A DNA stretch of 64,000 nucleotides from Heterodontus francisci (taxonomy: Eukaryota): contig NC_090387.1 of NCBI RefSeq assembly GCF_036365525.1, positions 76,445,300-76,509,299 on the forward strand, read 5' to 3'. The notes under the pieces were generated by a model that made no database searches, was not told the origin of the DNA, and saw nothing but the letters and a program-made list of their open reading frames with translations. This document shows, piece by piece, positions 4,840 to 49,701 of the stretch; the first letter of the stretch is position 1; each line of letters begins with the position of its first letter. The translations under genes and the position numbers were made by a program.

Positions 4840-4958
4840 TCAGCTTCTCTCTTTCGTTATCACGTTTACTTCAGCATACACTGCGCTCTTGTCTTGATCA
4901 GGTTTTGATGTTTTCTTGGAATCAGCGTAAGTCAGCTTGTTATCACCGCCTCTTTATT
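4840..4958 (-). pseudogene. Gene A terminal cytoplasmic exon, damaged
   Basis: Acceptor ttttacAG; homologous to 21776-21925 but with a 4-nt deletion near its start and a 15-nt deletion removing AALQL from LTYAAL; retains AVYAEV. Confidence 0.75.
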
Positions 4959-5182
4959 CTGTAAAAGTAATATTTAGTATCACTCGTTAATCTATTGCCC
5001 ACTCATTGCTTGAGGTAATCGAGGTTTGAAAAAGGCTGTAGTGAAATTTCTTCTCATCAATTACCAACTTCAGATTGTAACCGGATTTTGTATTAGTTTA
5101 TTTCTCTCTGCAAACAATTCATGTTGCGTTACAATTTCAGGCCCTCCCCTAAATCTTATTGGTATTCCCCTGAAACCTTCAG

Positions 5183-5340
5183 ATAAAATTAGTTCTGATG
5201 TAACAGGTCACAGACCTGTAATATTATATGTTTCTCTCTCCATCGATGCTGCCAAATCTGCTGAGTATTTCCAGCACTTTCTGTCTTTTTTGTCCAGATT
5301 TCCAGCATCCGCAGTATTTTGCTTTTATAAAATTAGTTCT
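5183..5340 (+). mobile_element. Short Penelope-terminus-derived element with decayed hammerhead core
   Basis: Similar to 14049-14187; flanked by direct repeat ATAAAATTAGTTCT; equivalent copy at 22161-22315. Confidence 0.7.
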
Positions 5341-6132
5341 CCTGCTGATGCAGCCCATTTAAGGGAGCAGATTGATACTTCAATTAAAATAGAAACATGA
5401 GTTTCATACTGGTCTGTTCATGGTATTTGGAATGATGAAATTATAAATCACCGTTTTTAAGGCCCTGTTGTTTGAGCCTCGACAGCCAATGCGCCCTTAC
5501 CCCATGGGCGACGCTCCAAGGTCACATTTTTCAGCCGCCTTTCCCCTCGCCCCGCCGATCTCTGAGACACAAAGGTCAAATGTGATGAATCTTGGCTGAG
5601 ATCAGCTATCACAACGCAGTGGTAGATTAAACCTGGGATCTTTGCAATTCCTGCAGCCCAGTGTCGTAACCTGTCGTAATATGAGCTGTACCTAGGCATA
5701 CACCGTACTCTGCTCCTTCTGTCAGTGTTTCGCTTTGTTTCTGGTCCTGGTTTCGACAGTTGCATAGGGCAATTCTTGTTTTGTCTGTAAAATAGATATT
5801 TGCCAGTCTTACCAGGCGAGTTTATTATTTTTTAATTTGTAATCGTTATTACAGCCAGACCCGAAAGCTAAATGGGGCTAATTTTGACTGACTACTGTCG
5901 TGTCATACGGATGAAGAGTCCGCAACCCGTTTTACATCTCTCATGATTTCGATTTCCAACCAAGTCAGCGGGAGAGCTGCCGATTCGCCAGCACTCATTA
6001 CATACTGTCCCATAAAGTCAAAACTACCTCGGTAAATTCTGTATAGGTTGTTAGAGTTGACTCTGTTGTCACAGAGTGTTGATTTTGTGTAGAAATGGTT
6101 TGGATATCATTCGTGCCAATCGCTCGCCCTAC

Positions 6133-6245
6133 CTGGGGATAGACGGTGTGCTCTATTCTCATGCCTACGTTTGGGGGGTTCCTTTGTCATCTCTCAAGTT
6201 TAGAGTAGCGTAGGCGGCAATTTGCTCATTTGTTCCTTGTCTAAC
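6133..6245 (-). pseudogene. Gene A cytoplasmic exon 2 (VRQGTNEQIAAYATLNLRDDKGTPQT*)
   Basis: ttttgacAG ... CAG|gtaggg; 113 nt versus 111 nt in the paralog; a +1 shift in a C-run gives an early TAG; the downstream HTVYPQ motif is out of frame. Confidence 0.75.
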
Positions 6246-6721
6246 CTGTCAAAATAGATATGAAATACTGATAGCTGAGAGTCGAATACAGCAGCCAGCT
6301 ATCATCAATTGGAACGGAGTCTGAAAGTGTCAATATGGACACATGAATATGAATTGGATAGTTATTTCAAATACAGTAACCGATAAAATTAGGGCTTAAT
6401 TGCATTTTGTCCACTCTCAATGATTTCATTCAATATCCCATCTATAGGGTGAGTAATAATGTTCCAAATATGATATCCGGACAGTTCAAATATTCCTAAT
6501 CCTCTGTCATCCTAGCCTATTGAAAGACCTTCCAGGCCGAGCCTGAAATTGTTCTCGCTCCACTTCTAGCCATTTTCACCCCGAGCAGGAAATCAGCCGC
6601 TGGAACCCTTCCCCCCGCAGCTGCCCAACCCAGGAGTTCGGGGTGCAGGTCAATTCGGTACCGATAGCCCTGTCCCAGCCAACACACCAGATTTGGGGAC
6701 GGCACCAGGGACGTTCCGATT

Positions 6722-6872
6722 CTAAAAGCAAAATACTGCGGTTGCTGGAAATCTGAAAGATAAACAGAAAATAATGGAAATACTTTGTGGAGAGAGAAGC
6801 AGAGTTAACCTTTCAGGTCTGTGACCTCTCACGGAAGGTTACACGTCTGAAACGTTGGCTCTGTTTCTCTTA
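6722..6872. repeat. Palindromic Penelope-terminus-derived repeat (paralog at ~23690-23835)
   Basis: GAGAGAAGCAGAGTTAACCTTTCAGG ... CTGAAACGTTGGCTCTGTTTCTCT inverted arms. Confidence 0.65.
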
Positions 6873-6999
6873 CCTTCCTAATCTGTCTGGTTGTGCTGCA
6901 CAATATCTCAATCAGGCAACTGGGCATCTCCGATTTTTAAAATAATTTGAATTATGAAAGAGGAAATTGTCAGAAGTATATGTTACAGTAAATACAAAT

Positions 7000-7610
7000 T
7001 TGTATCTTGGCCTTAAAATCAAGATATCGTGTACAAAAACAAGGAATTTATGCAAAACCTTTCTAAATCACTGGTCAGGCCTCAGTTGGAGCACTGTATT
7101 CAATTCCGGGCACCACACTTTAGGAAAGATGTCAAGGCTTTCGAGAGCATGCAAAGCAGATTTATTGAAATGGTATCAGGGATGAGCGACTTCAGTTATG
7201 TTGAGGAGACTAGAGAATCTACGATCGTCCTCCTTGGAGCAGAGAACGTTATGGGGAGATTTAATAGAGGTGTTCAAAATTCTGAGAGGTTTTGATAGAG
7301 TAAATAAGGAGAAATTAATTTGGGTTGGGTTGGTATCCAGGGGACAGCTTTTTAAAATAATTGGCAAATAATCAGGGAAGACAAGGATATTTTTAATGCA
7401 GCCGCTGTTGTGATCTGGAATGCACTGCCTGAAAGGGTGGTGGAAGCAGATTCAATAGAAACTTTCAAAAAGGATATATACTTGCAATGAAAATATAATG
7501 TAAGGCTATTGGTAAAGAGTCGGCGAGTGGGACGAATTGGATAGTTATTTCAAAGAACCGGCACAGGCACCCTGGCCTCCTTCATTGCTGTAGGATTCTA
7601 TGATTCTATT
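7000..7610 (+). mobile_element. CR1 LINE 3' fragment (paralog at ~23970-24565)
   Basis: LVRPQLEHCIQF-type C-terminal ORF2 remnant and ATTCTATG-like tail. Confidence 0.8.
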
Positions 7611-7680
7611 AAATTACATTAATATCTTCTAGTCTATACACCCGCCTCTTTTTGGAAGATGAGAAACATTGCCACCTTAC

Positions 7681-7724
7681 CGGCTCTTCAGCCTGACTCG
7701 CTTCCTCAGAATTATTCTTATTGC
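7681..7724 (-). CDS. Gene A 44-nt juxtamembrane exon (GNKNNSEEASQAEEP)
   Basis: ctttccctcAG ... CCG|gtaagg; phase 1 to 0, joining the TM exon to the next exon in frame; same length in the paralog at 24654-24697. Confidence 0.75.
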
Positions 7725-7965
7725 CTGAGGGAAAGAGATGTCCACAATCAATAGCTTAATCAGTGTATAAGCAAAACAACTTCATACTTACGATGATAAA
7801 CACAGGTACTGTGTAAAGTAAGGAAACTTGAAGGTACAGATCTCTCCGAAGACGTTAAGCAGTATCAGCCAAAACAGTGCAGCATGCTGTGCATTACCTT
7901 CTCAAACCCCGCAGTGGTGCTGCACCTAATGGAGTAGACATTGCCTTTGTGCGATAGTGCAAAAC

Positions 7966-10412
7966 CAGGCCGTCCAATATTTTCGCGGTACGCGGGGTGG
8001 GGGGTGGGGAGGGGGCACAATACAATTTGTTTCTGACATAGGGGCTGGTGAGACAATTTTGGAAGGATAAAGGCATTAAAAAAAATCTTACTATTAAAAC
8101 AACAAATGTGCAATTTTTGAGAGGACGCTTTAAATAAGATTACTTTATTAACTTCTTTTCTCAGCACTATATTAGACACTGAGGCACAGTGTGGCTTTCG
8201 TGCAGAGAGATCGACTATTGACATGCTGTTCTCCCTTCGTCAGATACAGGAGAAATGCCGTGAACAGCAGATGCCCCTCTACATTGCTTTCATTGATCTC
8301 ACCAAAGCCTTTGACCTCGTCAGCAGACGTGGTCTCTTCAGACTACTAGAAAAGATCGGATGTCCACCAAAGCTACTAAGTATCATCACCTCATTCCATG
8401 ACAATATGAAAGGCACAATTCAACATGGTGGCTCCTCATCAGAGCCCTTTCCTATCCTGAGTGGTGTGAAACAGGGCTGTGTTCTCGCACCCACACTTTT
8501 TGGGATTTTCTTCTCCCTGCTGCTTTCACATGCGTTCAAATCCTCTGAAGAAGGAATTTTCCTCCACACAAGATCAGGGGGCAGGTTGTTCAACCTTGCC
8601 CGTCTAAGAGCGAAGTCCAAAGTACGGAAAGTCCTCATCAGAGAACTCCTCTTTGCTGACGATGCTGCTTTAACATCTCACACTGAAGAATGCCTGCAGA
8701 GTCTCATCGACAGGTTTGCGTCTGCCTGCAATGAATTTGGCCTAACCATCAGCCTCAAGAAAACGAACATCATGGGGCAGGATGTCAGAAATGCTCCATC
8801 CATCAATATTGGCGACCACGCTCTGGAAGTGGTTCAAGAGTTCACCTACCTAGGCTCAACTATCACCAGTAACCTGTCTCTAGATGCAGAAATCAACAAG
8901 CGCATGGGTAAGGCTTCCACTGCTATGTTCAGACTGGCCAAGAGAGTGTGGGAAAATGGCGCACTGACACGGAACACAAAAGTCCGAGTGTATCAGGCCT
9001 GTGTCCTCAGTACCTTGCTCTACGGCAGCGAGGCCTGGACAACGTATGCCAGCCAAGAGCGACGTCTCAATTCATTCCATCTTCGCTGCCTTCGGAGAAT
9101 ACTTGGCATCAGGTGGCAGGACTATATCTCCAACACAGAAGTCCTTGAAGCGGCCAACATCCCCAGCTTATACACACTACTGAGTCAGCGGCGCTTGAGA
9201 TGGCTTGGCCATGTGAGCCGCATGGAAGATGGCAGGATCCCCAAAGACACATTGTACAGCGAGCTCGCCACTGGTATCAGACCCACCGGCCGTCCATGTC
9301 TCCGTTATAAAGACGTCTGCAAACGCGACATGAAATCGTGTGACATTGATCACAAGTCGTGGGAGTCAGTTGCCAGCATTCGCCAGAGCTGGCGGGCAGC
9401 CATAAAGACAGGGCTAAATTGTGGCGAGTCGAAGAGACTTAGTAGTTGGCAGGAAAAAAGACAGAGGCGCAAGGGGAGAGCCAACTGTGCAACAGCCCCA
9501 ACAAACAAATTTCTCTGCAGCACCTGTGGAAGAGCCTGTTACTCCAGAATTGGCCTTTATAGCCACTCCAGGCGCTGCTTCACAAACCACTGACCACCTC
9601 CAGGCGCGTATCCATTGTCTCTCGAGATAAGGAGGCCCAAAAGAAAAGAAATTAGACACTGATTTATTGAGATTCCTAACATTTTTTTTGCTTGCCCAAG
9701 TAGTCAATATTTGCCCCCACACCTGTTCTAGTGATGTGAAATATTCTGGATAGATGTCTATCTGTCAGTAATGATCTTGATCACAATCTCTCCCTCTCAA
9801 TCCCTGTCTCTCTCCCTGTGTTCCCCTGCTCTGTGTTGTTCCGCCCCCCCCCCCCGTTGTCCTTGCTGTCTGTGTCCCCCTCACTGTCTCCCTCTTTCTC
9901 TGTCACCCCTCTGTCACCTTTCACTCTCTGCTCCCCTCCCTCTCTGCCGCCCCTCCTTCCCCTTTTCTCTCTCACAGTTACAGAGAGTGGGAAAGCTCAG
10001 CAGAACAACTTTGTGGTTGGTTAATTTAAAAAAAAATCTCAAGCTAGTTTCACAGTTGACAGGTGCTGGGAGCTGGAAGAGCTGTTTCCGAGCTTCGGAC
10101 GAATTTAGGGTTTTCCGATGGGTGCCGACCTTTTTTTATAAAGCGCGCCGGAAAACGCTAAATCAGTCCGAAGTTTGAAAACTGCTGTTCCGCCTCGCAG
10201 CACCTGTCAGCTGTGAAACCGACGCTAATTGTTTTTGTCAAAAACCCGACCTGGAAGAAGAAGCCAATGAGAAATTGCTCATTTCCGAAATTACCAGTCA
10301 TGGAGACCTTGCGAGGATGAGGAACGGCCTGGTACAGTTTCCATCCGTGGGCCGGAAGGAACCCTTTGGCAGGCCGGATCCTGGCTCGCGGGCGGTATGT
10401 TGGATAACCCTG
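7966..10412. mobile_element. Non-autonomous hAT-like DNA element hosting the RTE insertion
   Basis: Right terminus GTTGGATAACCCTG is the near reverse complement of left terminus CAGGGGTGTCCAAC (clear in the paralog at 24938, decayed at 7966); flanks GTGCAAAA / GTGTAAAA resemble an 8-bp TSD. Confidence 0.55.
8183..9650 (+). mobile_element. Young 5'-truncated RTE-clade LINE
   Basis: Uninterrupted 456-aa ORF 8223-9593 (FIDLTKAFD, GVKQGC, LFADD, YLGS, C-terminal CxxC..H..C finger); (AAAAG)n tail; perfect 12-bp TSD ATTAGACACTGA at 8171-8182 and 9651-9662; empty site in the paralog near 25180. Confidence 0.95.
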
Positions 10413-10899
10413 GTGTAAAATATATAATCGAGTTGGCCGGCCATTTTACACCTCGAAATTACAATGCAAATAAAATTCGAGCGACATGTAAAATAGGTTG
10501 CCCCTGCCAATTCGATATCACCCATTTTACAGTATCGCAGAAAGTCAAAATCTACACTAAAGCGTTTACACTTCAAGATCTGGACCCGCAATGATAGCAA
10601 CAACAAAAAAATGCAAAACGTTAAGGATTCCGCGTATTGGAAAATAGAAGTGAAAAAGTCGAATGAATAGTTGGAATAGGAAGGTGAAATACTTGCATTT
10701 CAAGATCCAGTATACATGGTCATATTCAACTACCAATGATAGAAAGCTCTTGTGTTATCAACTTCATTCTTTAAAGATGCAGTAAGGTGCTCTTTATTCT
10801 TCTATAATTAATGACGTTTCACCTGCCCTTTCTGTATTGTAAAAATACAACTGGGCCTTTGAAAATAAAAGTATTCGGCGGAATAAGAAATATTATTAC

Positions 10900-11004
10900 C
10901 GTCTGATGCCTTTAATTTGAGTCCGGTCAAAATTGTTATTAATAGTAAAATTGCCAGTATGCCACCTGCACGTCCAAAAGTCGGCAGAAATTTGTAATCA
11001 GTAC
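10900..11004 (-). CDS. Gene A transmembrane exon (GTDYKFLPTFGRAGGILAILLLITILTGLKLKASD)
   Basis: cctgcAG ... GACG|gtaata; 105 nt, phase 1 to 1; hydrophobic stretch followed by basic KLK. Confidence 0.75.
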
Positions 11005-11314
11005 CTGCAGGATCAGCAGATAATTGAAACAAGAAACTATGGAGCACAGCGAGATATATACCGAGAGAATCGTGGGTCAGGCACGAGAGGACGAGTTGCA
11101 AAGGTATTTCTCGGGATAACGGCGTCTACTGTCAGTGGGGCTAAACCCCTTTTATTTCTAATGTACCAAACAATGGCAACTGTAATCCAGTAATGCAATT
11201 CATGCGACACCAGACTGATCTGCAACGGCTGCAAAGGTGGCAAAGTCTTCCATTCTTGATCGCTGACATGCATCAGCAGTGTTACAAGAGAATACCTACT
11301 GCAACATTTAGTAG

Positions 11315-15123: not shown

Positions 15124-15429
15124 CGTACACAGTAAGCTTGGAACCACTTCCATCTCCAATAGATCCCGTGATATTTTTCATGACAGTAATACATTCCGGA
15201 GTCTGCAACACTCGCATTCAGAACATCAAATGAACTACTTCCCTTTTTTTTACATTAAATCGCTTTCTGCTGTCTGGTTCCAGAAACAATCCCTCGCCGC
15301 GTTTCCACCAATAAACATCGGGCGGATCTTGAAATAGGGGAAATGTACAGAACATGGAAGCATTCGCACCTCTGGCAACCTTCAAGAATTTAGGGAACTG
15401 ATCCACTTTGTCCAAAGTTACTTCAGCGG
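15124..15429 (-). pseudogene. Gene A Ig V-set exon with J-like G strand (VJ type)
   Basis: AEVTLDKVDQFPKFLKVARGANASMFCTFPLFQDPPDVYWWK...DSGMYYC...GDGSGSKLTVY; tttctaatAG acceptor, G|gtaagt donor; 306 nt; two compensating frameshifts with TGA at 15218-15220 between them. Confidence 0.88.
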
Positions 15430-21775: not shown

Positions 21776-24697
21776 TCAGTGTTCAAGATTCTCAACTTCT
21801 CTATTTAGCACGTTTGCTTTAGCATACACTGCGCTCTTGTCTTGTTTAGGTTTTGATGTTTTCTTGGAATCAGCAAGCTGCAGAGCGGCGTAAGTCAGCT
21901 GGTTATCACCGCTTCTTTGTTTAGTCTGTAAAAGTAATATTTCGTATCACCCGTTAGTCTATTGCCCACTCATTGCTTGAGGTAATCGAGGTTTGAAAAA
22001 GGCTGTAGTGAAATTTCTTCAATTGCCAACTTCAGATTGTAACCGGATTTTGTTTTGGTTTATTTCTCTCCGGTTTCTCCCCTCTCTGCAAACGATTCAT
22101 GTTGTGTTCCAATTCCAGACCCTCCCCTAAATCTTATTGGCATTCCGCATTAACCTTCATATAAAATTAGTTCTGAAGAAAGGTCACAACCTGAAATGTT
22201 AACTTTGTTTCTCTCTCCATTCATGCTGACAGACCAGCTGAGTATTTCCAGCACTTTCTGTTTTTTTTCCAGTTTTCCAACATCCGCAGTATTTTGCTTC
22301 TATAAAATTAGTTCTCCTACTGATGCAGCCCATTTACTACTTCAGTAAAAATAGCAAAATGAATTTCATGCTGGTCTGTTAAGGGCATGTGGAATGACGA
22401 TATTGTAAAGCACCGTTTTTAAAGCTCTGTTCGTTGAGCTTCGATAGCCGATGTGATCCTTACCCCATGGAGGAGGCTCAAAGGTCACATTTTTCAGCCG
22501 CCTTTCCCCTATCCCCGCCGATCTCTGAGACACGAAGGTCAAATATGATGATCCTAGGCTGAGATCAGTTGGCACAACATAGTGGTAGATTAAACCTGTT
22601 ATCTTTGCATTTCGTGCAGCCTAGTATCGTACCACTTAACATTGCTGATGTGTCAGTGAATGATTTGAGCTCTACCTGAGCATACACCGTCATCTGCTTC
22701 TTCTGTCGGTGTTTCGCATTGCTCCTGGTCCTGGTTTCGACAGTGGCGTAGGGCAATTCTTGTTTCGTCTGTAAAATAGATATTTGCCAGTCTTACCAGA
22801 TAGGTTTCTTCTTTTTTCATTTGTAATCGTTATTACAGTCAGACCCGAAAAAAATGGGGATAATTTTGACTGACTGCTGTCGTGTAAAACAAATGGATAG
22901 AATCCGCAACCCGTTTCACATCTCTCCTGATTTCTATTTCCAACCAAGTCAGCGGGAGAGATGCCGATTCGCCAGTACTCGTTTTATACTGTCCCATAAA
23001 GTAAACACTACCTCGGTAAATGCTGTATAGCTTGTTAGAGTTGACTCTTTTATCACAGAGTGTTGATTTTGTGGAGAAATGTTTTGGATATCATTCGCGC
23101 GAATCGCTCGCCCGACCTGGGGATAGACGGAGTGCTGTATCTCATGTCTACGTTTGTGGGATGCTTTGTCGTCTCTCAAGTTTAGAGTAGCGTAGGCGGC
23201 AATGGGCTCATTCGGTCCTTGTCTAACCTGTAAAAATAAGGTATGAAATACTGACAGCAGAGAGCTTAATACAGCAGCCAGCTACCACCAATTGGAACTG
23301 AGTCTGAAAGTGTAAATATGGAGACAGTAACGATAAAATTAGGGCTTATTTGCATTCTGTCGTCTCGCAATGATTTCATTCAACATCTCATCTATAGGGT
23401 GAGGAATAATGTTCCAAATGTGAAATCTAGAGCGCTCAAATCTTCTTAATCCTCAGTCATCCCAGCCTATTGAAAGACCTTCCAGGCGGAGCCTAAAATT
23501 GTCCTCGCTTCACTTCCAGCCATTTCCATCCCGAGCAGGAAATCAGTTGCTGGGACCCTGGCCATTCGCCCGCTCCCCCCGCAACTGCCCAACCCAGGAG
23601 TTCAGGGCGCAGGCCAATTCGGTACCGGTAGCACTGTCCCAGCTAAAACACCATAGGTGGGGATGGCACCTGGCACGTTCTGAATCTAAGAGCAAAATAC
23701 TGCGGTTGCTGGAAATCTGAAATAAAAACAGCAAATAATGCAAATACTTTGTGGAGAGAGAAGCAGAGTTAACCTTTCAGGTCTATGACCTCTCATGGAA
23801 GGTCACAGGTCTGAAACGTTGGCTCGGTTTCTCTCACCTTCTTAATCGGTCTGGTTGTGCTGCACAATGTCTCAATTAAGCAACTGGGCATCTCCGATTT
23901 TTAAAATAATTTGAATTATGAAAGGGGAAGTTGTCAGAAGTATATGTTACAGTAAATACAAATATTTATTTTGGCCTTAAAATCAAGACATCGTGCACAA
24001 AAACAAGAATTCATGCAAAACCTTTCTAAATCACTGGTGAGGCCTCAGCTGGAGCACTGTGTTCAATTCCTGGCACCACACTTGTGGAAAGATGTCAAGG
24101 CCTTCGAGAGCATGCAAAGGAAATTTACTGAAATGGTATCAGGAATGAGCGACATCAGTTATGTTGGTGAGACTATAGAATCTACGATTGTCCTCCTTAG
24201 AGCAGAGAACGTTAAGGGGAGATTTAATAGAGGTGTTCAAAATTATGAGAGGTTTTGGTAGAGTAAATAAGGAGAAACGGATTTCACTGGTGGTTGGGTC
24301 GGTATCCAGGGGACAGGGATTTAAAATAATTGGCAATTAATTCGGGAAGATGTGGATATTTTTAATGCAGCCCGCTGTTGTGATCTAAAATGCATTGCCT
24401 GAAAGGGTGGTAGAAACTTTCAAAAAGGATACATACTTGAAATGAAAATAAAATGCAGCACTATTGGTAAAGAATTGGCGAGTGGGACTAATTGGATAGT
24501 TATTTGAAAGAGTCAGCACATACACCATGGGCTCCTTCCTTGCTATAGGATTCTATGATTCTACGAAATTAAATTAATATCTTCTCGATTTAATGCAAAA
24601 TGTCCTGCTATACCCACGCCTCTTTTTGGAGGATGAAACACATTGTTAGTTACCGGCTGTTCAGCCTGACTCACTGCCTCAGAATTTTTCCTGTTGC
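21776..24697 (-). CDS. Gene B: three intact cytoplasmic exons encoding a four-tyrosine ITIM-type tail
   Basis: Exons 24697-24654 (GNRKNSEAVSQAEQP), 23227-23117 (VRQGPNEPIAAYATLNL...HSVYPQ), 21925-21776 (TKQRSGDNQLTYAALQLADSKKTSKPKQDKSAVYAKANVLNREVENLEH*); GT-AG, in frame, no stops. Confidence 0.78.
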
Positions 24698-27311: not shown

Positions 27312-27662
27312 TTATTTCTTTAGAGATACAGCACTGAAACAGGCCCTTCGGCCCACCGAGTCTGTGCCAACCATCAACCACCCATTTATACTAATCCTAC
27401 ACTAATCCCATATTCCTACCACATCCCCACCTGTCCCTATATTCCCTTACCACCTACCTATACTAGGGGCAAATTTTATAATGGCCAATTTACCTATCAA
27501 CCTGCAAGTCTTTTGGTGGTGGGAGGAAACCGGAGTACCCAGCGAAAACCCAAGCAGACACAAGGAAAACTTGCAAACTCCACACAGGTCGTACCCAGAA
27601 TTGAACCCGGGTCGCTGGAGCTGTGAGGCTGCGGTGCTAACCACTGCACCACTGTGCCGCCC
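27312..27662 (-). mobile_element. Full-length HE1-like V-SINE inserted in the minisatellite
   Basis: tRNA head with A/B boxes, V-domain, CR1-like tail GGGCCGAAGGGCCTGT and A-rich end. Confidence 0.9.
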
Positions 27663-32400: not shown

Positions 32401-33153
32401 ACTACAATTTAGGTTCCCATTCCCCTGTGAATTAGTTTAAACCCCCCCAAAGAGCACTAGCAAATCTCCCCCCCAGGATATTGGTACCCCTCTGGTTCAG
32501 GTGAAGACCATCCTGTTTGTAGAGGTCCCACCTACCCCAGAAAGAGCCCCAATTATCCAGGAAACCAAAACCCTCCCTCCTACACCATCCCTGCAGCCAC
32601 GTGTTCAACTCCTCTCTCTCCCTATTCCTCGCTTCGCTATCACGTGGCACAGGCAACAACCCAGAGATAACAACTCTGTTTGCTCTCGCTCTAAGCTTCC
32701 ACCCTAGCTCCCTGAATTTCTGCCTTAAATCCCCATCTCTCGTTCTACCTATGTCGTTGGTGCCTATGTGGACCACGACTTGGGGCTGCTCCCCCTCCCC
32801 CTTAAGGATCCCAAAAACACGATCCGAGACATCACGAACCCTGGCACCTGGGCGGCAACACACCAACCGTGAGTCTCTCTTGTTCCCACAGAACCTCCTA
32901 TCTGTTTCCCTAAATATGGAGTCCCCAATGACTAATACTCTGCTCCTCTTCCCCCTTCCCTTCTGAGCAACAGGGACAGACTCTGTGCCAGAGACCTGTC
33001 CCCCATTGCTTACCCCTGGTAATTTATCCCCCGCAACAGTATCCAAAATGGTATACCCGTAGTTGAGGGAAAAGGCCACAGGGGATCCCTGCATTGCCTG
33101 CTGGTTCCCTCTCCTTCCCCTGACGGTAACCCATCTACCTACATCTTTTACCT
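29470..33153 (-). mobile_element. CR1 LINE copy A: partial ORF1 (SGNH esterase) and ORF2 split by one TGA
   Basis: ORF1 GDSI/HIGTND/DGLHL (32432-33150); EN half 30889-32274, RT half 29560-30867; (TTCTAA)n tail. Confidence 0.95.
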
Positions 33154-35589
33154 GAGTGAGTGAGTGTTGGCAAGTGATTCCCAAGATCTAGATAGTGAGG
33201 ATAGGCGAGAGTAATCCCTAATATCTAGATCATGATGGTGGATGAGATTGATCCCTAATATCTGGATCTTGACGATGGATGAGATTGATCCTCAATATCT
33301 AGATCATGAGGGTATTTGAAAGTGATCCCAAATATCTAGATCGTGAGGGTATGCGATAGTTATCCCCAACATCTAAATTGTAATGGTAGACAAGATTGAT
33401 CCCCAATATCTATATTGTAATGGTAGACAAGATTGATCCCCAATATCTATATTGTAATGGTGGACAAGAGGGATCCCCAATATCTAGATTGTAATAGTAG
33501 GCAAGTGTGATCCCCAATATTTAGACTGTGCAGATGGTTAGAGTGATCCCCAATATCTAGGAGTATAGTATCCCTTATTGAGGTTATAAGCTAATATAGT
33601 CCATGGGCTTTAGATGTCATGGGACAGGTGGGCCTTTAATCAGGAGCAAGCTATAGCTTGGATAGATAATAAGATTACTTTTCAGTCTTTGCTGTTGATA
33701 AAGTCCAGCCTATATTGTTATAAACTGCCCTTTAGACAATCTAACATGACATAAACACTTGAAATTATGGAGAGTTGCCACAATATTATATGTAGACTTG
33801 CAAGGAAACTCCAGAACTCCAGGCCAGCACAACATGACTTTGCTTGCATTATTAATACATACCACTCTTTTCTATCTACCGGTAATGGGACAGAGCTAGA
33901 CTGCAGCTCCGCACTGTGAAAGATATAATAATGGGATAGTTGATGCAATACATGGTGTAACTATTTATGGCAGCGATCCAGTATTTTGTCTCTCCTGCAA
34001 TAACTGAGATACTTCATGATTTACTCCATTCACATATCAAACAAGTAACTGAAGAGTTTGTATGGTGATGCACAATAAATACTATATTATTCAGCACAGA
34101 AGAGTATCAATTTCCCAAGTGTTCACTGAACTTATTTTTAAATCCATGAGTACAGTTGCTTCAGACAAATATAATTCACTTACAATATCACTTCAGTTCA
34201 ATGTGACTTGTGTTTATATAAATCATATTGAACATTCTAAATTTAAACTGTTTAGTAAAATATGGCAATCTTACCTCTGCATACACAGAATTTACAAAAT
34301 ATTGATGTAACCAGAAGCAGCAGGAGGAAATCTCCACTCCCTTTTATAGATACAGATCCACCAGGGTAGAATATCTGATTCTTGCTCTGCAATATCTCAA
34401 ATGTAAATACATGTCTCAACGTAATAGTTATATCATACCACTGGAAAGGTATGAACAATACAACGCAGATGTGTGAACAATACAACACATGCACCTTTCA
34501 ACACTTAAATTCAAACACTGATATACACAGTAACAATGTGATTTAATCTGACAATACCACATCCAGGTTAGTAAACATAGAGATTGTAAATAATACTGGT
34601 TAGAAATATACATGTATTTTTGTAACATTAAGTCAGAAAAATAATGGTACAATGGGTAGAGGAGAAATGTTTCAATTTACCTTCTATGTTCTCTCCTATT
34701 CTAGCCGTGCCCTCATTCACTGCCAAAACCTACCCTTCTCTTTGACAGACCCGCATTCCCTCTTATTGATGGACTGGAAGATCACACCTTTGCTGTTGAT
34801 CCTTCTCTGTGACAGACCTGGACTGGAGAATCTCACCACTGCTGTTGAGACCCTCTGTGAGAGACCTGTAGTCTATCTCACTGATGGGCTGGAGAATCTC
34901 ACCGTTCCTGCAGGCACTTCTCTATTCCAGACCTACACACAATCTCACTGTTGCTGCTGAGCTCCTGCTAAAAGTTGTCAACGTCATTTAAAATTGAACA
35001 GATTCGACTTAAATTTCTGAATTACACAGACAGGAGTTTTCTGAAATTAAAAAATATTGCTAACTAAACTTCGGGAGCAGGCATTTGATAAAATATTTCT
35101 TTGCTTACAAGCACCTTAAGAAGCTACTTGAATCACATGAAAGTATATGATTGTGTCAATTCCAGATCACATTGTCACAGCAAAAATTATGCATTGCTGT
35201 TTTGGTCTTCACGCTCCAATAAATATAGGTGTGCTAAACACTTTCTGATGAAAACTCTGTACCTTTAAAATGAAGCGTTGCCACCCAAGTGACTTTGAAT
35301 TAAGCTGCCTGTTAGGACTGTGATCCTTTTTGTTGAGATACATCCTGTACATTGTATCATAATTTCTCCTCTCCATTGGCATCAGCGCTGGAACTGTGAC
35401 CGAGTGGGACTGCTCCTGGGTTAAAATCCTGAAACTCCCTTCGTAACAGCAATGTAGGTATACCTGGCCCACATGGACTGCAGCGATTCAAGAAGGCAGC
35501 TCACCACCACCTTCCAAAGGGCAAGTAGGGATTGGCAATAAATGCTGGCTTAGCCAACGACGCTGACATCCCATGAACGAATTAAAAAA

Positions 35590-37004: not shown

Positions 37005-39970
37005 ATGGGAACCTAAATTGTAGTTCCAGTGTGCAGGATGTTGAGAGTAGTGAGGTCAGGGATAAGGTTATAAGGACACAAGAGGGCACTGGCAAGCAAG
37101 AGCTTGGTTTAAAATGTGTCGACTTCAACGCCAGGAGCATCCGGAATAAGGTGGGTGAGCTTGCAGCATGGGTTGGTACCTGGGATCTCGATGTTGTGGC
37201 CATTTCAGAGACATGGGTAGAGCAGGGACAGGAATGGATGTTGCGGGTTCCGGGATTTAGATGTTTCACTAAGAACAGAGAAGATGGTAAAAGAGGGGGG
37301 TGGGGGGGTGGGGGGGTGGCATTGTTAATCAAGGAAAGTATTACAGCGGCAGAAAGGACGTTTGAGGACTCGTCTACTGAGGTAGTATGGGCCGAGGTTA
37401 GAAACAGGAGAGGAGAGGTCACCCTGTTGGGAGTTTTCTATAGACCTCCAAATAGTTCCAGAGATGTAGAGGAAAGGATAGCAAAGATGATTCTTGACAG
37501 GAGCGAGAGTAACAGGGTAGTGGTTATGGGGGACTTTAACTTTCCAAATATTGACTGGAAATACTATAGTTCGAGTACTTTAGATGGGTCTGTTTTTGTC
37601 CAGTGTGTGCAGGAGGGTTTTCTGACACAGTATGTAGACAGGCCAACCAGGGGCTATGACACATTGGATTTAGTACTGGGTAATGAACCCGGCCAGGTGT
37701 TAGATTTAGAAGTTGGTGAGCACTTTTTTGATAGTGATCACAATTCGGTTAGGTTTACCTTAGCGATGGGCAGGGACAGGCATATACAGCAGGGCAAGAA
37801 TTATAGCTGGGGGAAAGGACGTTATGATGCGATTAGGCAAGATTTAGGATGTGTAGGATGGGGAAGGAAACTGCAGGGGATGGGCACAATCGAAATGTGG
37901 AGCTTATTCAAGGAGCAGCTACTGCGTGTCCTTGATAAGTATGTACCTGTCAGGCAGGGAGGAAGTTGTCGAGCGAGGGAGCCGTGGTTTACTAAAGAAG
38001 TTGAAGAGCTTGTCAAGAGGAAGAAGAAGGCTTATGTTAGGATGAGACGTGAAGGCTCAGTTAGGGCGCTTGAGAGTTACAAGATAGCCAGGAAGGATCT
38101 AAAGGGAGAGATAAGAAGAGCAAGGAGAGGACACGAGAAGTCATTGGCGGATAGGATCAAAGAAAACCCTAAGGCTTTCTATAGGTATATCAGGAATAAA
38201 AGAATGACTAGAGATAGGTTAGGGCCAATCAAGGATAGTAGTGGGAAGTTGTGTGTGGAATCGGAGGAGATAGGGGAAGAGTTAAATGAATATTTTTCGT
38301 CAGTATTTACAGTCGAGAAAGAAAATGTTGTCGAGGAGAATACTGAGATACAGACTACTAGGCTGGATGGGATTGAGGTTCACAAGGAGAAGGTGTTAGC
38401 GATTTTGGAAAGTGTGAAAATAGATACGTCCCCTGGGCCAGATGGGATTTATCCTAGGATTCTCTGGGAAGCCAGGGAGGAGATTGCAGAGCATTTGTCC
38501 TTGATTTTTATTTCGTCATTGTCGACAGGAATAGTGCCGGAAGACTGAAGGATAGCAAATGTTGTCCCCTTGTTCAAGAAGGGGAGTAGAGACAGCCCTG
38601 GTAATTATAGACCTGTGATCCTTACTTCGGTTGTGGGTAAAATGTTGGAAAAGGTTATAAGAGATAGGATTTATAATCATCTTGAAAAGAATAAGTTCAT
38701 TAGAGATAGTCAGCACGGTTTTGTGAAGGGTAGATCGTGCCTCACAAACCTTATTGAGTTTTTTGACAAGGTGACCAAACAGGTGGATGAGGGTAAAGCC
38801 GTGTATGTGGTCTATATGGATTTCAGTAAGGCGTTTGATAAAGTTCCCCACGGTAGGCTATTGCAGAAAATACAGAAGTATGGGATTGAAGGTGAATTAG
38901 TGCTTTGGATCAGAAATTGGCTGGCTGAAAGAAGACAGAGGGTGGTGGTTGATGGTAAATGTTCATCCTGGAGTATAGTTTCTAGTGGTGTACCGCAAGG
39001 ATCTGTTTTGGGGCCACTGCTGTTTGTCATTTTTATAAATGACCTGGATGAGGGTGTAGAAGGAAGGGTTAGTAAATTTGTGGATGACACGAACGTCGGT
39101 GGAGTTGTGGATAGTGCGGAAGGATGTTGTAGGTTACAGAGGGACATAGATAGGCTGCGGAGCTGGGCTGAGCGATGGCAACTGGAGTTTAATGCGGAAA
39201 AGTGTGAGGTGATTCACTTCGGAAGGAGTAACAGGATTGCAGAATACTGGGCTAATGGGAAGATTCTTGGTAGTGTAGATGAGCAGAGAGATCTTTGTGT
39301 CCAGGTACATAAATCCCTGAAAGTTGCCACCCAGGTTAATAGAGCTGTTAAGAAGGCATATGGTGTGTTAGCTTTTATTAGTAGGGGAATCGAGTTTAGG
39401 AGCCACGAGGTCATGCTGCAGCTGTACAGAACTCTGGTGCGGCCGCACCTGGAGTATTGCGTGCAGTTCTGGTCACCGCATTATAGGAAGGATGTGGAAG
39501 CTTTGGAAAAGGTGCAGAGGAGATTTACTAGGATGTTGCCTGGTATGGAGGGAAGGTCTTACGAGGAAAGGCTGAGGGACTTGAGGTTGTTTTCGTTGGA
39601 GAGAAGGAGGAGAAGAGGTGACTTAATAGAGACATATAAGATAATCAGAGGGTTGGACAGGGTGGATAGTGAGAGCCTTTTTCCTCGGATGGTGATGGCA
39701 AACACGAGGGGACATAGCTTTAAGTTGAGGGGTGATAGATATAGGACAGATGTCAGAGGTAGTTTCGTTAATCAGAGAGTAGTCGGGGCGTGGAACACCC
39801 TGCCTGCAACAGTAGTAGACTCGCCAACTTTAAGGGCATTTAAGTGGTCATTGGATAGACATATGGATGAAAATGGAATAGTGTAGGTCAGATAGTTTCA
39901 CAGGTCGGCGCAACATCGAGGGCCGAAGGGCCTGTACTGCGCTGTAATGTTCTATGTTCTATGTTCTAAG
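37005..39970 (+). mobile_element. CR1 LINE copy B (ORF2 only), same subfamily as copy A, inserted in a palindromic repeat
   Basis: ORFs 37031-38548 and 38570-39886 are in the same frame, separated by TGA 38546-38548; (TGTTCTA)n tail; hairpin arms at ~36925-37000 and ~39970-40050. Confidence 0.95.
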
Positions 39971-42512: not shown

Positions 42513-45500
42513 AATGAGATGGCACAAAGGCTGTTCTTGTTGCATATAAGTTAGTCCGTGAAGCTTACCGTCAGATGTTTAGGAATTTATGGAGATTGAC
42601 TGGGCAGACATATTTAGAATTTGAGACGGTGAAGCAAATGAACTTTGACCGTTGGATATGGGCATGAAAGATAGAAACCACATATGAGAATTGATTCTCT
42701 TAGAAGAGTTTAAAAACTCCATTCCTTCAGTAGTGAGAGCGCAGATAGATAACCTGAAAGTTTTGAAAGCTAGGCAAGCAGCAGAGATTGCTGATGATTT
42801 GAGCTTGTGAATAAGCCAACCTATCTTGTCTGTCACAACCATAAACCCGAGAATGATAGAAAGTGGGAGAGTGAAAGGAAGACAAGTAGCCAGGGACAAG
42901 AAGGAACAGCTGGGATTGCCCCAGGATCACTTCCTCAGATCAAAAACGGTAGAAGTGAGGTTCACAAGCTAAAGTGTTATCATTGCAACAAAACGGGTCA
43001 TCTTCATTCAGAGTGATGAAAATTGTGAGGTAAGCTTATAGGACTTGTTGGGGTACACAAAGTTATTGCAGAGGAAAAGACTCTGACTGAGATAGAGCAG
43101 ACCAGGTTATATCTTTAATGACAGCTGTGAATGTGAAACCAGATACTAAGTGTAGAGGTTATGAATAAAATATCTGAGCATTATAATGAATTTTTGTCAA
43201 ATGGGAGAGTAAATCCTTATCCTGCAAATGAGGCAAGAAAACCTATCATTATACTCAAGGACACAGGAGCAACCCAAACTCTCTTGCTGGGGAAAGATAT
43301 GAGGTTTCCACCAGAGACAGCCTTAAATGCTAAAGTTTTAGGAAATGGAATTAGCGGGGCGTATTTCAGAATACGCTTGTAAAAAATACGCCTAGAAAAT
43401 GACTTAATATCTGAGATAGTTACTGCAGGTATTGTCCACAGTTTACCAGTGAAGGTAATTGATGTACTCCTAGGAATTGATTAGGCTGGATCAAAAATAT
43501 CAGTTTTTCCTATAGTTACAGAGGAACCAAGTGAAATTAAGGAAATGGAGCAATACAGGAACAATCCATGAATATTTCCTGCGTGTGTAGTTGCCCGAGC
43601 AATGGCTAAACAGGATCCATTGTTGGAGGTAAAAGGGGAACCACAAATAGATTGCCAAGTATCTGAAGCCTTATTTGGGGATTTAGATAATCCAAGTGAG
43701 ATGTTTGACAGCACATTGCAGCACAGCAAGCTGATCCGGAGATATACTGAATAGCACAAATGGCTCTGTCAGAAGCTGAGGCAAAACGAGTTCTGGAAGG
43801 CTATTATATGGCAAAAGGGGTTTGAGGAGGAAGTGGAGACCACCTCATAGGTCTGCCGACCAATACTGGACTGTTGTTGAACAGATCGTGGTGCCACCTA
43901 AATATCGACAAGGATTATTAAGTTTAGCAAACAGCATTCCTTTTGCAGGACATAGGGGAATTCAGAAAACCAAATCACACATAAGCCAGCATTATTACTG
44001 GTCAGGTCTCACAAAGGATGTGAGACAATTTCGTAGGACATTCCATACCTGTCAAATGGTGGGCAAATCACAAACTACCATAAATCCAGCACCACTAGTT
44101 CTCATTACAGTGATTGAGGAACCATTTAGCAGGGTATTAGTCGACTGTTAGGTCCCTTGCCGAAAACAAATGTGGAGCATCAATACTTACTTAGTAACAT
44201 GGATATGGCTACTCGATTTCCAGAGGCCATTCCGTTGAGGAAAAATACTGCTAGAGTAGTGGTAGAAAATGTATCCCGATTCTTAGTGAGATATGGGTTG
44301 CCACTTGAAGTTCAATGAGATCAAGGTTCTAATTTCATGTCCAGTATATTTCAAGAAGTCATGGGTAATTTGGAGATTAGACAGTTGAAATATTCAGCAT
44401 ATCACGCACAGTCACAGGGAGCTTTAGAGAGATATCACCAGACTCTCAAAACGATGATTAGAACATACTTTCATGAATATCCACATGACTGGGATAAAGG
44501 ACTGCACTTTCTTTTATTTTCCACCAGAGACTCACCGAATGAGTCTATAGGCTTCAGTCCTTTTGAATTGGTTTATGGACATGAAGTAAGAGGTCCTCTA
44601 GAACATATAAAGGACAGATTCCTAGAACAAAAGAATGAAACATCTCTACTAGGCTATATATCTGTGCTCTGGGAAAGACTCACAAAAGCTTGTGGGGTGG
44701 CTCAGGAACACCTTAAAGCATCCCAAGCCAATATGCAAACATGGACAGATAAGAATGCAAACGCCCATGATTTTCAACCAGGGCATAAAGCATTGGTGTT
44801 GTTGTCATTACAGGGAGAACCATTGAAAGCACGGCTCAGAGGCCCATATAGAGTGCGTAAGGTAGATTACTTGATTGACACCCCTGATCACCGGAAGAAG
44901 AACCAGTTGTGTCACATTAATATGCTCAAACAATATTACCGCAAGGAGGAGGATATGCCAGGACATGTATATCAAGTAATCGGGACTGTTGAGAAGGAAA
45001 AGGATAGCAAAGACGAGGGAGAAGTAGGCCTAGGAAATTCTCAGATTGAATCTCCAACTGTCAGATTAACGAATACCGAATGGCTAGGAAAATCAGGTGA
45101 TATGCTTTTACACTTACAGGCAAAACAACGTGAAGACCTACCCAGGCTTTTCACAACGTTCCAAAAGGGATGATCCAGGATGCACAACCTTAGCCACACA
45201 TGATGTGGATATAGGGGGAAACGTTCCTTTAAAACAACATCCTTACCACTTGAGTCCAGACAGACAGGCCCAAGTGGAAGCAGTGGTACAATGCCTGCCA
45301 AAGGACAGCTTAGGTGAACCTTGTCAGGGCAGCTGCAATTCGCAGGTGGTCTTGATGTCTAAACTTGGTTGGTTGGCTTAAACGTGCATAGACTCTAGAA
45401 AAGTCACTGTGGTCAAGAAGGGAGATTCCTACCCAAATTCTCATTTAAAGGACTGTATGGACAGAGTGGGCAACAGCATATGTCTCAAAGAGACAGATGT

Positions 45501-46943
45501 GTTCGAAGGATACTGTCAAATTCCTTTGACACCCCAGGGCAAGAAATAAAATAGCTTCTCTTACACCGGACATGGGTTTTCCAATGTCAAGTGATGCCAC
45601 ATAGGTTAAGGGGTACTCAAGAAACCTCCCAGAGAATAGTGAAATCAGTGTTCTTAACTGTACAGTTCACCTGGCTGAGATGATGGACAATAAGGACACT
45701 TGGAAGGAAAATATGAAACAATTGGAAGACTATGCTTGTAAATTTGAAATGGATTAATTGGAACAACCTTGTGAAAAATTAAAGCCGAAATGTTCTGATG
45801 GAACTTGTTGCTGCAGTCTTAACATTTTAGAAAAATGTATGCCTGTAAACGTGAGAAAACACTTAGTTTTTATTTCAATTTGTTTTTTTTACCCATTGTA
45901 ATGAAACGCATTTCAGGAATGGCATTTCATCCCGCCAGGGGCGGAGGTGTTATGATCCTATAGTTTTTTTTTAGGAAGAATGCAGTGTACCTTTAAGGCT
46001 GTAAAGAGAGCAGTACTGCTTTAAGGCAGCAAGCTCTAAAAAACGGAGTCAAAGAATGCATTCTCGTTGCCCAGGATACGGCCATTCGGAGACTGTGAGT
46101 CAAAGAGTGCATTCTTGTTGCCCGGGATATGGCCATTCAGAGACTGTGAGTCAAACAGTGAATTTTCGTTGCCCGGGATGCGGCCATTCAGGACCAAAGA
46201 TCGAGAGATACAATGTTGCAATTTACTATTGAACTGGTTTATCGTGGAAACAGATGGTTCTAACTCAGAGAAACAGACAGACAGCTGTGTGTTAGCATCT
46301 GAAAAGAGGGCTCTCAGACCATTTAAAGCAAGGAAGAGAATTTATTCTGTTTACTTATTATTCTCTCTCAAAATTTTAAAAGTCAAGCCAAAACAGAGTC
46401 TTCTGATAATTTAAACCGAAGGAACGGAAGTTAGACTGTGACATTCTTTTATCTCTCAACAATTCTAAAGCCAATTTGATTCATAAAAAAAAGTGTTTGC
46501 AAGTTGTTAATTATTAAAATCAATCCCTGGAGAAGGAGCACCAATTTTGACTTCTGGATTAAACTACGGACTGTTCTGCTGTTGAAGAACCTTTTTTCCC
46601 CATCGGATGGCTGTGAAGACTTCAAGCAGCCTTGGACTGTTGCACATCCGGCAGGAGCGTAAATCTGCAAGGACTCTATTTTTTTCTATTTTAAATGTTG
46701 TTTATATCTTAGTGTGTTTAAGAATGTATTTTTCTGATTAAATATTTAATTTGTTGATTTTAAGACACCTGGGATTAATAGATGTTACCATTTGGCTGGG
46801 TCTTTCTTTAATTTGGGAAGTTTAAAATGATATGTTAGGCAATCTGTGGAGGGACGGTATTGAATTAACAGTGTGTTTCTCCCACCACAATCAGAATTGT
46901 ATATTTTGATTGGGGTCTTTGACAGGAGCGGTCGGTCATAACA
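42513..46943 (+). mobile_element. Gmr1-like Gypsy LTR element 1 (5' truncated): gag, protease, integrase, partial RT, 3' LTR
   Basis: LEEFKNSIP, CYHCNKTGH, DTGATQTLL, H..H/C integrase finger, QSQGALERYHQTLK, then RT start (HPY.LSP); polypurine tract then LTR TGTTATGA...TCATAACA at 45948-46943. Confidence 0.88.
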
Positions 46944-47129
46944 AAACTACACACACATACACAATGAATAAGTGCAGATGCATTGAGAATTACTCCAGTT
47001 AATTTCAGTAATCCAAGTCTTACATTCATCTCACATCTTGTGTCCAGACTTGGTTATAAATCAATTGAATAATTTCGGGCAAAATGTTAATGGATGGCTA
47101 GCTCTTGGATGGTGAAGAGACTTTTAGCT

Positions 47130-48160
47130 AAGTTGGAATTGATTGCAAATTATTGACCTGGTGAGCAAATTAGCTGAGCAGCAGAAGACAAAGGACAGGA
47201 ATAAAAAGTAGGTACTTTAATTGGCAGGCTGTGACTCGTGGTGTCCCACAAAGATCTCTGTTGGTGCCTCAACTATTCACTGTATTTATTAACGACTTAG
47301 ATGATCGGATAGAAAGCCACATATCCATACTTGCCCATGACACAAAATAGGCGGCATTGTAAACAGTGTAGATAAAGTATAAAATTACAAAGAGATTTAA
47401 TAAATTGCGAATGGGAAAAACTGTGGCAAATGGATTCCAATATAGGCAAATGTGATATCATCCACTTTGGAGCTAAAAGGATGGAACAGGATACTTTCTA
47501 AATAGTGAAAATTTAGAATCAGTGGAGGTGCAAGGAGATTTGGGGGCCCAGATACATAGATCACTAAAATTCAATGAACAGGTGCAGAAAATAATCAAAA
47601 AGGCCAATGGAATGCTGGTCTTATATATCTGGAGGACTGGAATACAAGGGGGCAGAAGTCATGCTTCACTATACAAAGCCCAGGTTAGACCATACCTGTG
47701 TGCCGTTCGAGGCACCACACCTTCGGAAGGACATACTGCCCTTGGAGGGAGTGTTATATAGAACATACCTTTACTCCAAACATTAAATTACAAAGAGTGA
47801 TTACACAAACTTAGATTGTATTCCCTTGAGTTTAGAAGGTTAAAGGGTGATTTGATCAAAGTTTTCAAAATATTAACGAGAACAGATAGGGGAGAAACTA
47901 TTCCTGCTGGTTGGGGAATCTAAATCTAGGGGGCAAAGTCCAAAAATTAGAACCAGAACTTTCAGGAGTGAAATTAGGAAACACTTCAACACACAAAGGG
48001 TAGTACAAATTTGGAACTCTCTTCTGCAAATGGCAATAGATGATAGATCAGTTATAAAATTTAAATCTCAGATTGATAGACTTTTGTTAGCCAGAGGTAT
48101 TAAGGGATATGGGGCAAAGGCGGGTATACGGAGCTAGGTGGCTGATCATCCATGATGTCA
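47130..48160 (+). mobile_element. CR1 LINE 3' fragment, heavily decayed
   Basis: GVPQ, INDLD, QGDLGAQIHRSLK remnants. Confidence 0.8.
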
Positions 48161-48164
48161 CACC

Positions 48165-48545
48165 TCACTCGGGACTGGAGTATACAAATCTTGGCTGACA
48201 ATCCATGTCGTACTGAAGGCTGCAGCACTGTTGAAGGTGCCTTCTTTCTGATGAGACATTAAACGGAGGCCCTTCTGCTCTCTCAGGTGGATGTAACAGG
48301 TCCCGTGGCGCTATTGTGAAGAAGAGCAGAGAAATTATCCCTGGGTGTCCTGGCCAATATTCATCCCACAAAACAGATTGCCTAATCATTATCACATTGC
48401 AGTTTGTGGGATCTTACTGTGCGCGCAAGTTGGCTTCCGCCTTTCCTGCATTACAAAGGTGACTACACTTTCGATGTACTTCATTGGCTGTAAAGCGCTT
48501 TAGGAACTCCCGTGGTCGGGAAAGACGCTAAATAAATATAATTTT
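48165..48545 (+). mobile_element. Deu-SINE (SacSINE1/AmnSINE-like), 5' truncated
   Basis: Deu-domain-like GGTGCCTTCTTTCTGATGAGACATTAAACGGAGGCCC and L2-type tail TGTAAAGCGCTTT...GCTAAATAAAT. Confidence 0.75.
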
Positions 48546-48970
48546 TCTACAAAATTGTTTGGAAACAATAATTGGTCCGATAACCAGGCGGCTGCATGTT
48601 TACTCCCGTTTAATAACTGGGGGAAATTTCCCCTGGTTGCTATTTATAGTGAAATCTTAAATGGCTTCTTTTAAAACACTTCCACTATTTTCCTAGAACA
48701 TGAAAATCCTCCAAATTTCTTCGCAACGTTGCTAACCCATAGAGACCAGAGGAGATCAGAGTCGTTTGTGAGGAGATATAAACTTTGGACCAGCTAATGT
48801 GTCGAGATAATATCCGATTACTTTCAATGTGTAAATTGTGAGCAAATGTCCACCTTCAAAGAACCTTCATTTTCATCTCCTATCGGTTAACGCGACGTTA
48901 TTTACTGACTTACAACAACGATTTGTTCTGTCAAGCGGCGATGCACTCTGGTAATAAACGCATTTCTTAC

Positions 48971-49085
48971 CTTTGACAGTACCTTCACTTAAAATAATTC
49001 CCAACGATGACTATCAGCACCATTATTATCAATATACCCACCAACTGCCGAGACACCAAAAAGAGGGTAGCGACATTAGCAGCAC
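48971..49085 (-). pseudogene. Decayed transmembrane exon of an Ig receptor paralog
   Basis: ...GILIIMVLIVIVGNYFK* followed by strong donor AG|gtaaga; acceptor damaged (gtcg); ~310 nt downstream of the C1 exon. Confidence 0.6.
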
Positions 49086-49394
49086 CGACAAACACAGAGT
49101 AACGGAGATATAGTACCGACGGGCGCTAATGTCAATTAAACCAACAAGAAAACCCAGGGATACACGGGAACAGAACTAATCGTGTAAAGGCCATTTAATA
49201 TAAATAAAGATCATGTTTAAAAAATATTCAAGTAAAATTCCAACAAATGGAACAATTCACAACCTGACCAATAAATCATCAATGTAATAAACGAATGCAA
49301 TAACAGCAAATGCTAACACGTGTTCACAAACTTGTGCTGGCATTAAGAAAAACGATAAATGAAAGAACGTTTCTGAAAAATGAATTGACCATAC

Positions 49395-49701
49395 CTTCAA
49401 AGTTGTAATTAACATTGGTTGGAGTCTGAAGAGAGACATGAGACACTTGGCAGCTGTATGTAACTCCACTGTGAGATGGCGCCGGATCATTTAAAGTGCT
49501 GGAAATCTCATAGAGTCCCACCCTGGTTTGCTGTTTAGTAGCATTGATCCCGATTCCCGGTTACAATTTTTATATTTTTCTTATACCAATTCACATTGAG
49601 ATCTTCAGGGTAAAATTTAGCTGTTTTACACAGGAGAATCGGAGAAGTGGATGGACAGAATTCAGACTCAACTAATTAGATCCTCAGAGGAGTGGGCGGA
49701 A
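49395..49701 (-). pseudogene. Ig C1-set exon, pseudogenised
   Basis: VPPTPLRI*...LLCKTAKFYPEDLNVNWYK...GLYEISSTL...YSCQVSHVSLQTP; cctcccaAG acceptor, G|gtatgg donor, phase 1 to 1; TAA at 49678-49676 and a 7-nt insertion near 49549-49555. Confidence 0.88.

Follow-up and report, generated by a model that had tools for sequence, protein, structure and literature searches.

The window analyzed here, a 64,000-nt stretch of NC_090387.1 from the horn shark Heterodontus francisci, carries on its minus strand scattered exons of a receptor family in which a variable (V) domain with a joining (J)-like strand precedes a C1-set domain, a transmembrane (TM) segment, and a tail with tyrosine motifs. It is rich in transposons and contains no runs of N. 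We put at about 85% the probability that a tandem multigene cluster has decayed over this stretch, leaving no working member in it, a figure that applies jointly to the assignment of its gene A (15697–4840) as a young type I pseudogene. The copies found here cannot make a receptor. A preliminary description of this DNA had presented it as a hidden receptor cluster. However, no copy in the window is intact, and RefSeq annotates close paralogs that are intact and lie on this chromosome; the copies are dead members of that family, which is already in RefSeq, and not a new cluster.

Leader, VJ, C1-set, TM, and tail exons had all been proposed. Each could be mapped on the minus strand between 4840, the last base of the stop codon in the last tail exon, and 49701, the first base of the C1 exon, and the splice phases match. 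Gene A begins with a leader exon (15697–15643) that has an ATG start and a phase-1 donor (G/gtacct) and shares 89–90% identity with the leader in two annotated horn-shark proteins, P0033 and P0042. The V exon (15429–15124; 306 nt, AG/GT, phase 1-1) includes its own J-like strand, whose motif GDGSGSKLTV ends 4 nt before the donor. A connecting-peptide/TM exon (11004–10900, phase 1-1) is matched by the family hidden Markov model (HMM) at 4.9e-6. Four tail exons follow at 7724–7681 (phase 1-0, open), 6245–6133 (with ..AAYATLNL.. and ..TVYPQ), 5784–5692, and 4958–4840 (these three in phase 0), the last of which keeps AVYAEV and the stop codon.

We read the exons from the DNA and searched them singly; read-throughs with X at the breaks entered only the change counts and the tree. 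The single pieces returned only generic or sub-threshold matches (T-cell receptor (TCR) V domains and Robo for the V exon; TAPBPR and immunoglobulin (Ig) constant domains at about 1e-5 for the C1 exon), and their Pfam V-set and C1-set scores fell short of the cut-offs. Full-length relatives were obtained by phmmer, with a 69-residue V piece as the query against 1.84 billion representatives. The closest relative of that piece is horn-shark XP_067906043/45 (P0033/P0003). P0033 (380 aa) starts with a leader and a V domain containing IGDGSGSQLTVY; a VPPTPL hinge leads to one C1-set domain (FYPEHLEISW, YTCLASH), and beyond it come a membrane-proximal Cys, a TM helix, and a tail in which one of the six tyrosines is that of LTYAALQL. 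In the intact paralogs both Pfam V-set and C1-set score above their cut-offs, and the tails conserve one canonical immunoreceptor tyrosine-based inhibitory motif (ITIM; LTYAAL), a TxYxxL motif, and other tyrosine motifs. The homologous tail has six tyrosine positions, where four motifs had been counted from the window.

RefSeq names the paralogs [quoted passage not shown] and similar, i.e., SIRP-alpha-like, and when P0033 alone was compared with the PDB the best single-receptor match was SIRP-alpha (2wng; 1.4e-10 over V and C1). Both observations bear out the SIRP-alpha-like character that had been assigned to the tails. Two wider searches collected 31 and 42 members, all of them, at the sensitivity used, from sharks, rays, and chimaera. 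Automatic annotation has given them inconsistent names, namely SIRP-alpha/beta/gamma-like, NCR3LG1-like, tapasin-related-like, Ig lambda-like, and TCR beta-like. A single 99.65-Mb record carries several of the intact paralogs from horn shark. No paper describing the family was found in literature searches on PRARP, cartilaginous-fish SIRP, and UrIg.

A tblastn search of the window with intact P0033 matched the V exon at 1.8e-36, C1 at 4e-16, TM at 1e-10, and the tail exons at 1e-9 to 2e-18. The window exons match family members co-linearly, in the right order and phase, and the family HMM, run over six frames of the window, recovered the same exons and none besides. Because of these tblastn E-values and HMM matches, we regard the exon set as real rather than a product of chance. 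A chance origin, or descent from ordinary rearranging Ig light-chain or TCR clusters, could be entertained for the V and C1 pieces taken alone, which match TCR V and Ig C domains weakly; with family E-values down to 1e-36, V and J in one exon with a donor, and relatives that are membrane receptors with tyrosine tails, we consider it vanishingly improbable. No heptamer–spacer–nonamer resembling a recombination signal sequence (RSS) occurs on either strand of the 64-kb window. Since V and J share one exon that ends in a splice donor and the window holds no RSS, the earlier designation of these genes as non-rearranging VJ(-C1) is correct, and they are not parts of ordinary Ig light-chain clusters.

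The evidence that gene A is dead comes from its exons one after another. In the V exon, two extra A residues lie in an A8 run (about 15247–15254), and one extra base lies about 70 nt further on, in the loop resembling complementarity-determining region 3 (CDR3). These frameshifts displace both the ..SSFDVLNASVADSGMYYC stretch and the F strand (..DSGMYYC) from the correct reading frame, and the main frame now contains a TGA. The V-set hallmarks (Cys23, Trp41, and D-x-G-x-Y-x-C) and the G-x-G motif of J are all present, divided over two frames; the family HMM matches the exon in both (6e-23 and 2e-8), and the Pfam V-set matches to the two pieces are co-linear. When its breaks are read through, the V domain shows about 92% identity to P0033, and gene A is therefore taken to be a young type I copy.

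The tail is damaged as well. Tail exon 2 has two 1-nt insertions, compared with a second copy of the tail elsewhere in the window (copy B, described below), with a net frameshift. In tail exon 3 a TGA replaces an Arg codon of the paralogs, and the last codon is TAG in place of Gln. The last exon lacks 4 nt at its 5′ end, its homologous frame contains a TAA, and the ITIM-like LTYAALQL has lost ALQLA to a 15-nt deletion. Altogether, gene A has at least eight disabling lesions and lacks a C1 exon, and no open frame runs through all of its exons. The preliminary description had treated the exons as merely needing repair; they are truly broken, by stops, frameshifts, and indels.

No C1 exon was found between the V and TM exons (15124–11004) by tblastn or the family HMM, and the V exon would splice in frame straight to the TM exon at 11004–10900. 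This interval is highly repeated and transposon-like, with long plus-strand open reading frames (ORFs) at 11.5–13.7 kb. The segment 11635–14306 has very high contig depth, both in a DNA run (up to about 3 million) and in RNA-labeled runs (0.6 million summed word depth), and is apparently a highly repeated, transcribed transposon family located where the C1 exon of gene A would be expected. Directly upstream of the TM exon on the minus strand, and in the same frame, 11005–11104 encodes ..VLSCLTHDSL.., which loosely resembles the end of C1 in the family (..VYTCLASHISL..). This likeness may be accidental, or the segment may be what is left of the missing C1 exon; the family HMM does not extend there.

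Several observations weigh against the reading of the window as decayed and of gene A as a pseudogene. Three of the frameshifts lie in short homopolymer runs (A8, C6, and A4). The sequencing data consulted were assembled Logan contigs from public data, whose RNA labels are guesses. Among the DNA contigs, one (depth 23 of 170) is two A shorter at 15244, which removes the first V frameshift; the shorter length at 15244–15254 is the in-frame length of the intact paralogs, and the contig may represent an allele or a paralog. Two places in gene A, the 5′ half of the V exon and the TM exon, lie in bins reached by RNA-labeled contigs, so that transcription of gene A is possible. No such contig covers the leader or the 3′ half of V, the parts in which the divergence of gene A from its paralogs is greatest, and none of the contigs listed contains a V-to-TM joint. 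The RNA-labeled contigs fit transcripts of near-identical live paralogs and carry no weight for or against expression of gene A. Finally, copy B of the tail has all four exons open, which leaves room for a use of that copy.

These points could be assembled into a different account, in which gene A is live and encodes a V-only short form like that of the Mobula protein P0008, its breaks being assembly errors or private to the assembled haplotype. Besides the homopolymer runs and the two-A-shorter contig, this account can draw on the fact that the V insertions together add 3 nt and leave the exon in frame at its end, on the retention of all splice sites, and on the existence of a natural V-TM-tail form in a ray (P0008). 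We nevertheless judge it highly improbable. Nonsense substitutions and indels of 4, 7, and 15 nt are among the lesions of gene A and of a C1 exon at 49.4 kb, and lesions of these kinds cannot be put down to homopolymer errors. For gene A itself, the two nonsense substitutions, the TAA, and the 4- and 15-nt tail deletions are not artifacts of that kind. An independent DNA contig matches 15061–15208 exactly and spans the second V frameshift, which it confirms; even with an A6 run at the first site, this later +1 shift would still destroy the J strand. Among the RefSeq proteins retrieved, none is an exact counterpart of the gene A exons, and the window exons are identical to none of the annotated horn-shark proteins compared (P0033, P0041–P0045, P0059, P0068, and P0069).

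The TM exon of gene A suggests a further alternative. The membrane-proximal Cys of the family is an Arg in gene A, and this change, together with the disabled tail, would suit an inhibitory receptor converting to an activating or decoy form that has an Arg near the membrane and a truncated tail and is still made as protein. The V exon upstream is broken, however, with a TGA and with the F strand and second cysteine out of frame, so that there is no ectodomain to display, and the Arg sits at the edge of the helix rather than inside it. We regard such a conversion as very unlikely and retain the assignment of gene A as a pseudogene.

The remaining exons come from other subfamilies. The C1-set exon at 49.4 kb (49701–49395, minus strand, phase 1-1) is interrupted by an in-frame TAA (codon 8) and, near 49556, by an insertion of 7 nt. 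On the coding strand it lies upstream (5′) of the leader and V exon of gene A, and it therefore belongs to another gene. This result divides the earlier proposal that the exons splice together as a receptor: the phases agree, but the exons do not form one transcription unit. The C1-set motifs FYP..(I/L/V).W and Y.C.V.H are found in the exon, the family HMM matches it at 1e-11 and 2e-16, and C1 domains in the PDB match it at about 1e-5. A half-exon scores 16.2 bits against Pfam C1-set, below the 21-bit cut-off, compared with 34–57 bits for the intact paralogs. The exon is only 40–53% identical to any known family member, and in the C1-domain tree it takes a long branch outside the type I (98/96) and type III (100/100) clades. 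Judged from its sequence, it is a broken orphan from a different subfamily than gene A.

A V exon belonging to this C1 exon was sought upstream as far as 64000 with tblastn and the family HMM, and none was found. Three copies of a long repeated element, in direct and inverted orientation and 79–88% identical, lie at 42514–46115, 51297–54506, and 54918–59427. The element, probably a retroelement, fills the place where that V exon would be expected. A candidate TM exon at 49080–48997 (minus strand), 310 bp downstream of the C1 exon, is hydrophobic and bounded by AG/GT; it was rejected because its HMM E-value is 0.48, its phase is wrong, and it contains an in-frame TGA.

A second orphan, the TM exon at 34386–34275 (minus strand), represents a third subfamily. 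One extra A in an A run shifts its frame, and on either side of the shift it is 81% and 92% identical to horn-shark P0069, a type III member with an LPWWIY-type TM segment (here ..LPWWI..). No V exon was found upstream of it within the window. Inverted repeats of 2.95 kb with 94.6% identity (29470–32420 and 37005–39969) flank this exon together with the second of two minisatellite arrays.

Copy B of the tail consists of four minus-strand exons (24697–24654, 23227–23117, 22768–22676, and 21925–21776), all open and with intact splice sites. It lies in one of two segmental duplication blocks, 4828–10321 (copy A, the tail module of gene A) and 21779–25880 (copy B), which are 80–84% identical. The upstream edge of the copy B block adjoins a 37-bp minisatellite of about 96 copies (25907–29455). 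No usable V, C1, or TM exon lies upstream of copy B in the window. In the last exon AVYAEV has become AVYAKA, and the stop has moved by 5 codons. Copies A and B are 89.3% identical in exons and 86.8% outside them (p = 0.22), and relative to P0033 copy B has accumulated 15 derived amino-acid changes and copy A 9. By these two measures, exon versus non-exon identity and the count of derived changes, there is no sign of constraint on copy B. We read it as an orphan, a partial segmental duplicate of gene A's tail that ends at the minisatellite and drifts neutrally.

Copy B might instead serve as the working module of a chimeric gene, its tail exons being spliced to the 34.3-kb type III TM exon or to exons outside the window. 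Its four open exons with intact splice sites agree with this proposal, as do the phase-1 end of the 34.3-kb TM exon, which suits the phase-1 start of the first copy B exon, and the nature of the lesion in that TM exon, a single extra A in an A run. The two exons are separated, however, by 9.6 kb that hold the minisatellite and a CR1-like element, and neither a V exon nor an intact C1 exon lies upstream in the window. Copy B also shows no excess of exon conservation, has more derived changes than the dead copy A, and has lost AVYAEV. A tail swap of this kind thus appears to us a long shot, and neutral drift of an orphan duplicate remains our preferred reading.

A more speculative proposal concerns the movement itself, namely that the window records a reshuffling of the family's signaling ends, in which a complete four-exon tail was block-copied downstream of exons from other subfamilies, the phase-compatible type III TM exon among them, with the edge of the copy at the 37-bp minisatellite. 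We think this unlikely. Were it true, and were it also to happen in live members, block transfer would offer a way to swap inhibitory tails among VJ-C1 receptors, and the family would constitute an undescribed chondrichthyan set of antigen-receptor-shaped, non-rearranging genes.

The repeats around the duplication were also recorded. Copy A is split at about 8183–9651 by a long interspersed nuclear element (LINE), whose plus-strand ORF (8121–9590) is an uninterrupted 490-codon reverse transcriptase (Pfam RVT_1, 1.9e-26). The LINE is absent from copy B; since it is in copy A only, it arrived after the duplication. It may be a young and possibly active element. The second 37-bp array, of 10.5 copies, lies at 33173–33560 in the same orientation as the first. 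Between the two arrays is the CR1-like element. It starts exactly where the first array stops, as would be seen if its insertion had divided a single array.

Taken together, the window pattern is one of birth-and-death evolution accompanied by transposon insertion. The fast turnover suggested in the preliminary description is borne out by pseudogenes of three subfamilies, the partial tail duplication, and the transposon insertions. For annotation, this means that the exons should be flagged as pseudogenes and orphan exons rather than as a new receptor cluster. What the window itself contributes is only evidence of rapid birth and death, in the form of the wreckage of three subfamilies, the loss of a C1 exon, and the partial duplication of a tail. 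The family is nonetheless worth study, as a large cartilaginous-fish group that is shaped like one antigen-receptor chain, never rearranged, and inconsistently named, and attention should go to its live members, which lie elsewhere on the chromosome.

The intact members have the architecture of type I membrane receptors, with a leader, a germline VJ exon, one C1-set domain, a Cys, a TM segment, and phase-0 tail exons. From their motifs, the V domain most likely binds a ligand, and the ITIM and other tyrosine motifs, once phosphorylated, most likely recruit SH2 phosphatases in the manner of SIRP-alpha. Disulfide-linked dimers may form through the membrane-proximal Cys.

Finally, we compared the family with known systems. 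The family profile matched UrIg2 (9dmx) in the PDB at 4e-31, SIRP-alpha at 2e-25, Ig light chains at about 1e-22, and SIRP-gamma at 1.6e-21, and it matched Ig heavy chains too. These matches reflect a general VJ-C1 resemblance and do not demonstrate SIRP orthology, although SIRP is the named family that comes closest. Like SIRP-alpha/SHPS-1 (PTPNS1), the shark receptors have a V domain with a J-like G strand in one exon, a C1-set domain, a single TM segment, and a tail in which several tyrosines occur, one of them in an LTYA(A/D)L-type ITIM. Unlike SIRP, whose three Ig domains are arranged V-C1-C1, the intact shark members have one C1 domain; they have six tyrosine positions rather than four, and a membrane-proximal Cys is present. 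By sequence similarity, Ig chains and UrIg2 are at least as near to the family as SIRP is.

NKp30 (NCR3) and PRARP have been named as VJ-type non-rearranging genes (PMC10751288, PMC11599192). What they have in common with the family is a membrane receptor whose V domain is of the joined VJ type. In its present state gene A resembles NKp30: its V exon precedes the TM exon directly, and an Arg lies near the membrane. Yet gene A acquired this layout as a type I member that lost its C1 exon, and not through NKp30 ancestry. NKp30 is not among the best PDB matches of either P0033 alone or the family profile. With Ig light chains and TCR chains the family shares V-J plus one C1 domain, the VPPTP start of the hinge, and the motifs FYP..(I/L/V).W and YTC.VSH, and many Fab light chains match both domains. 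It differs from them in having no V/J split and no RSS, unlike a rearranging locus, and in adding a TM segment and a signaling tail.

The "pre-rearrangement" architecture that had been suggested as ancestry is thus only a resemblance, common to SIRP, UrIg, and others. UrIg and UrIg2 are non-rearranging antibody genes with VJ-C1 in sharks (PMC12227049, PMC10751288), and the family described here shares with them an elasmobranch germline-joined VJ exon followed by a C1 domain. The solved UrIg2 chain (9dmx), however, is built as V-C1-C2-C3, whereas the receptors described here are V-C1-TM with a tail of tyrosine motifs and form a large, fast-turnover family.

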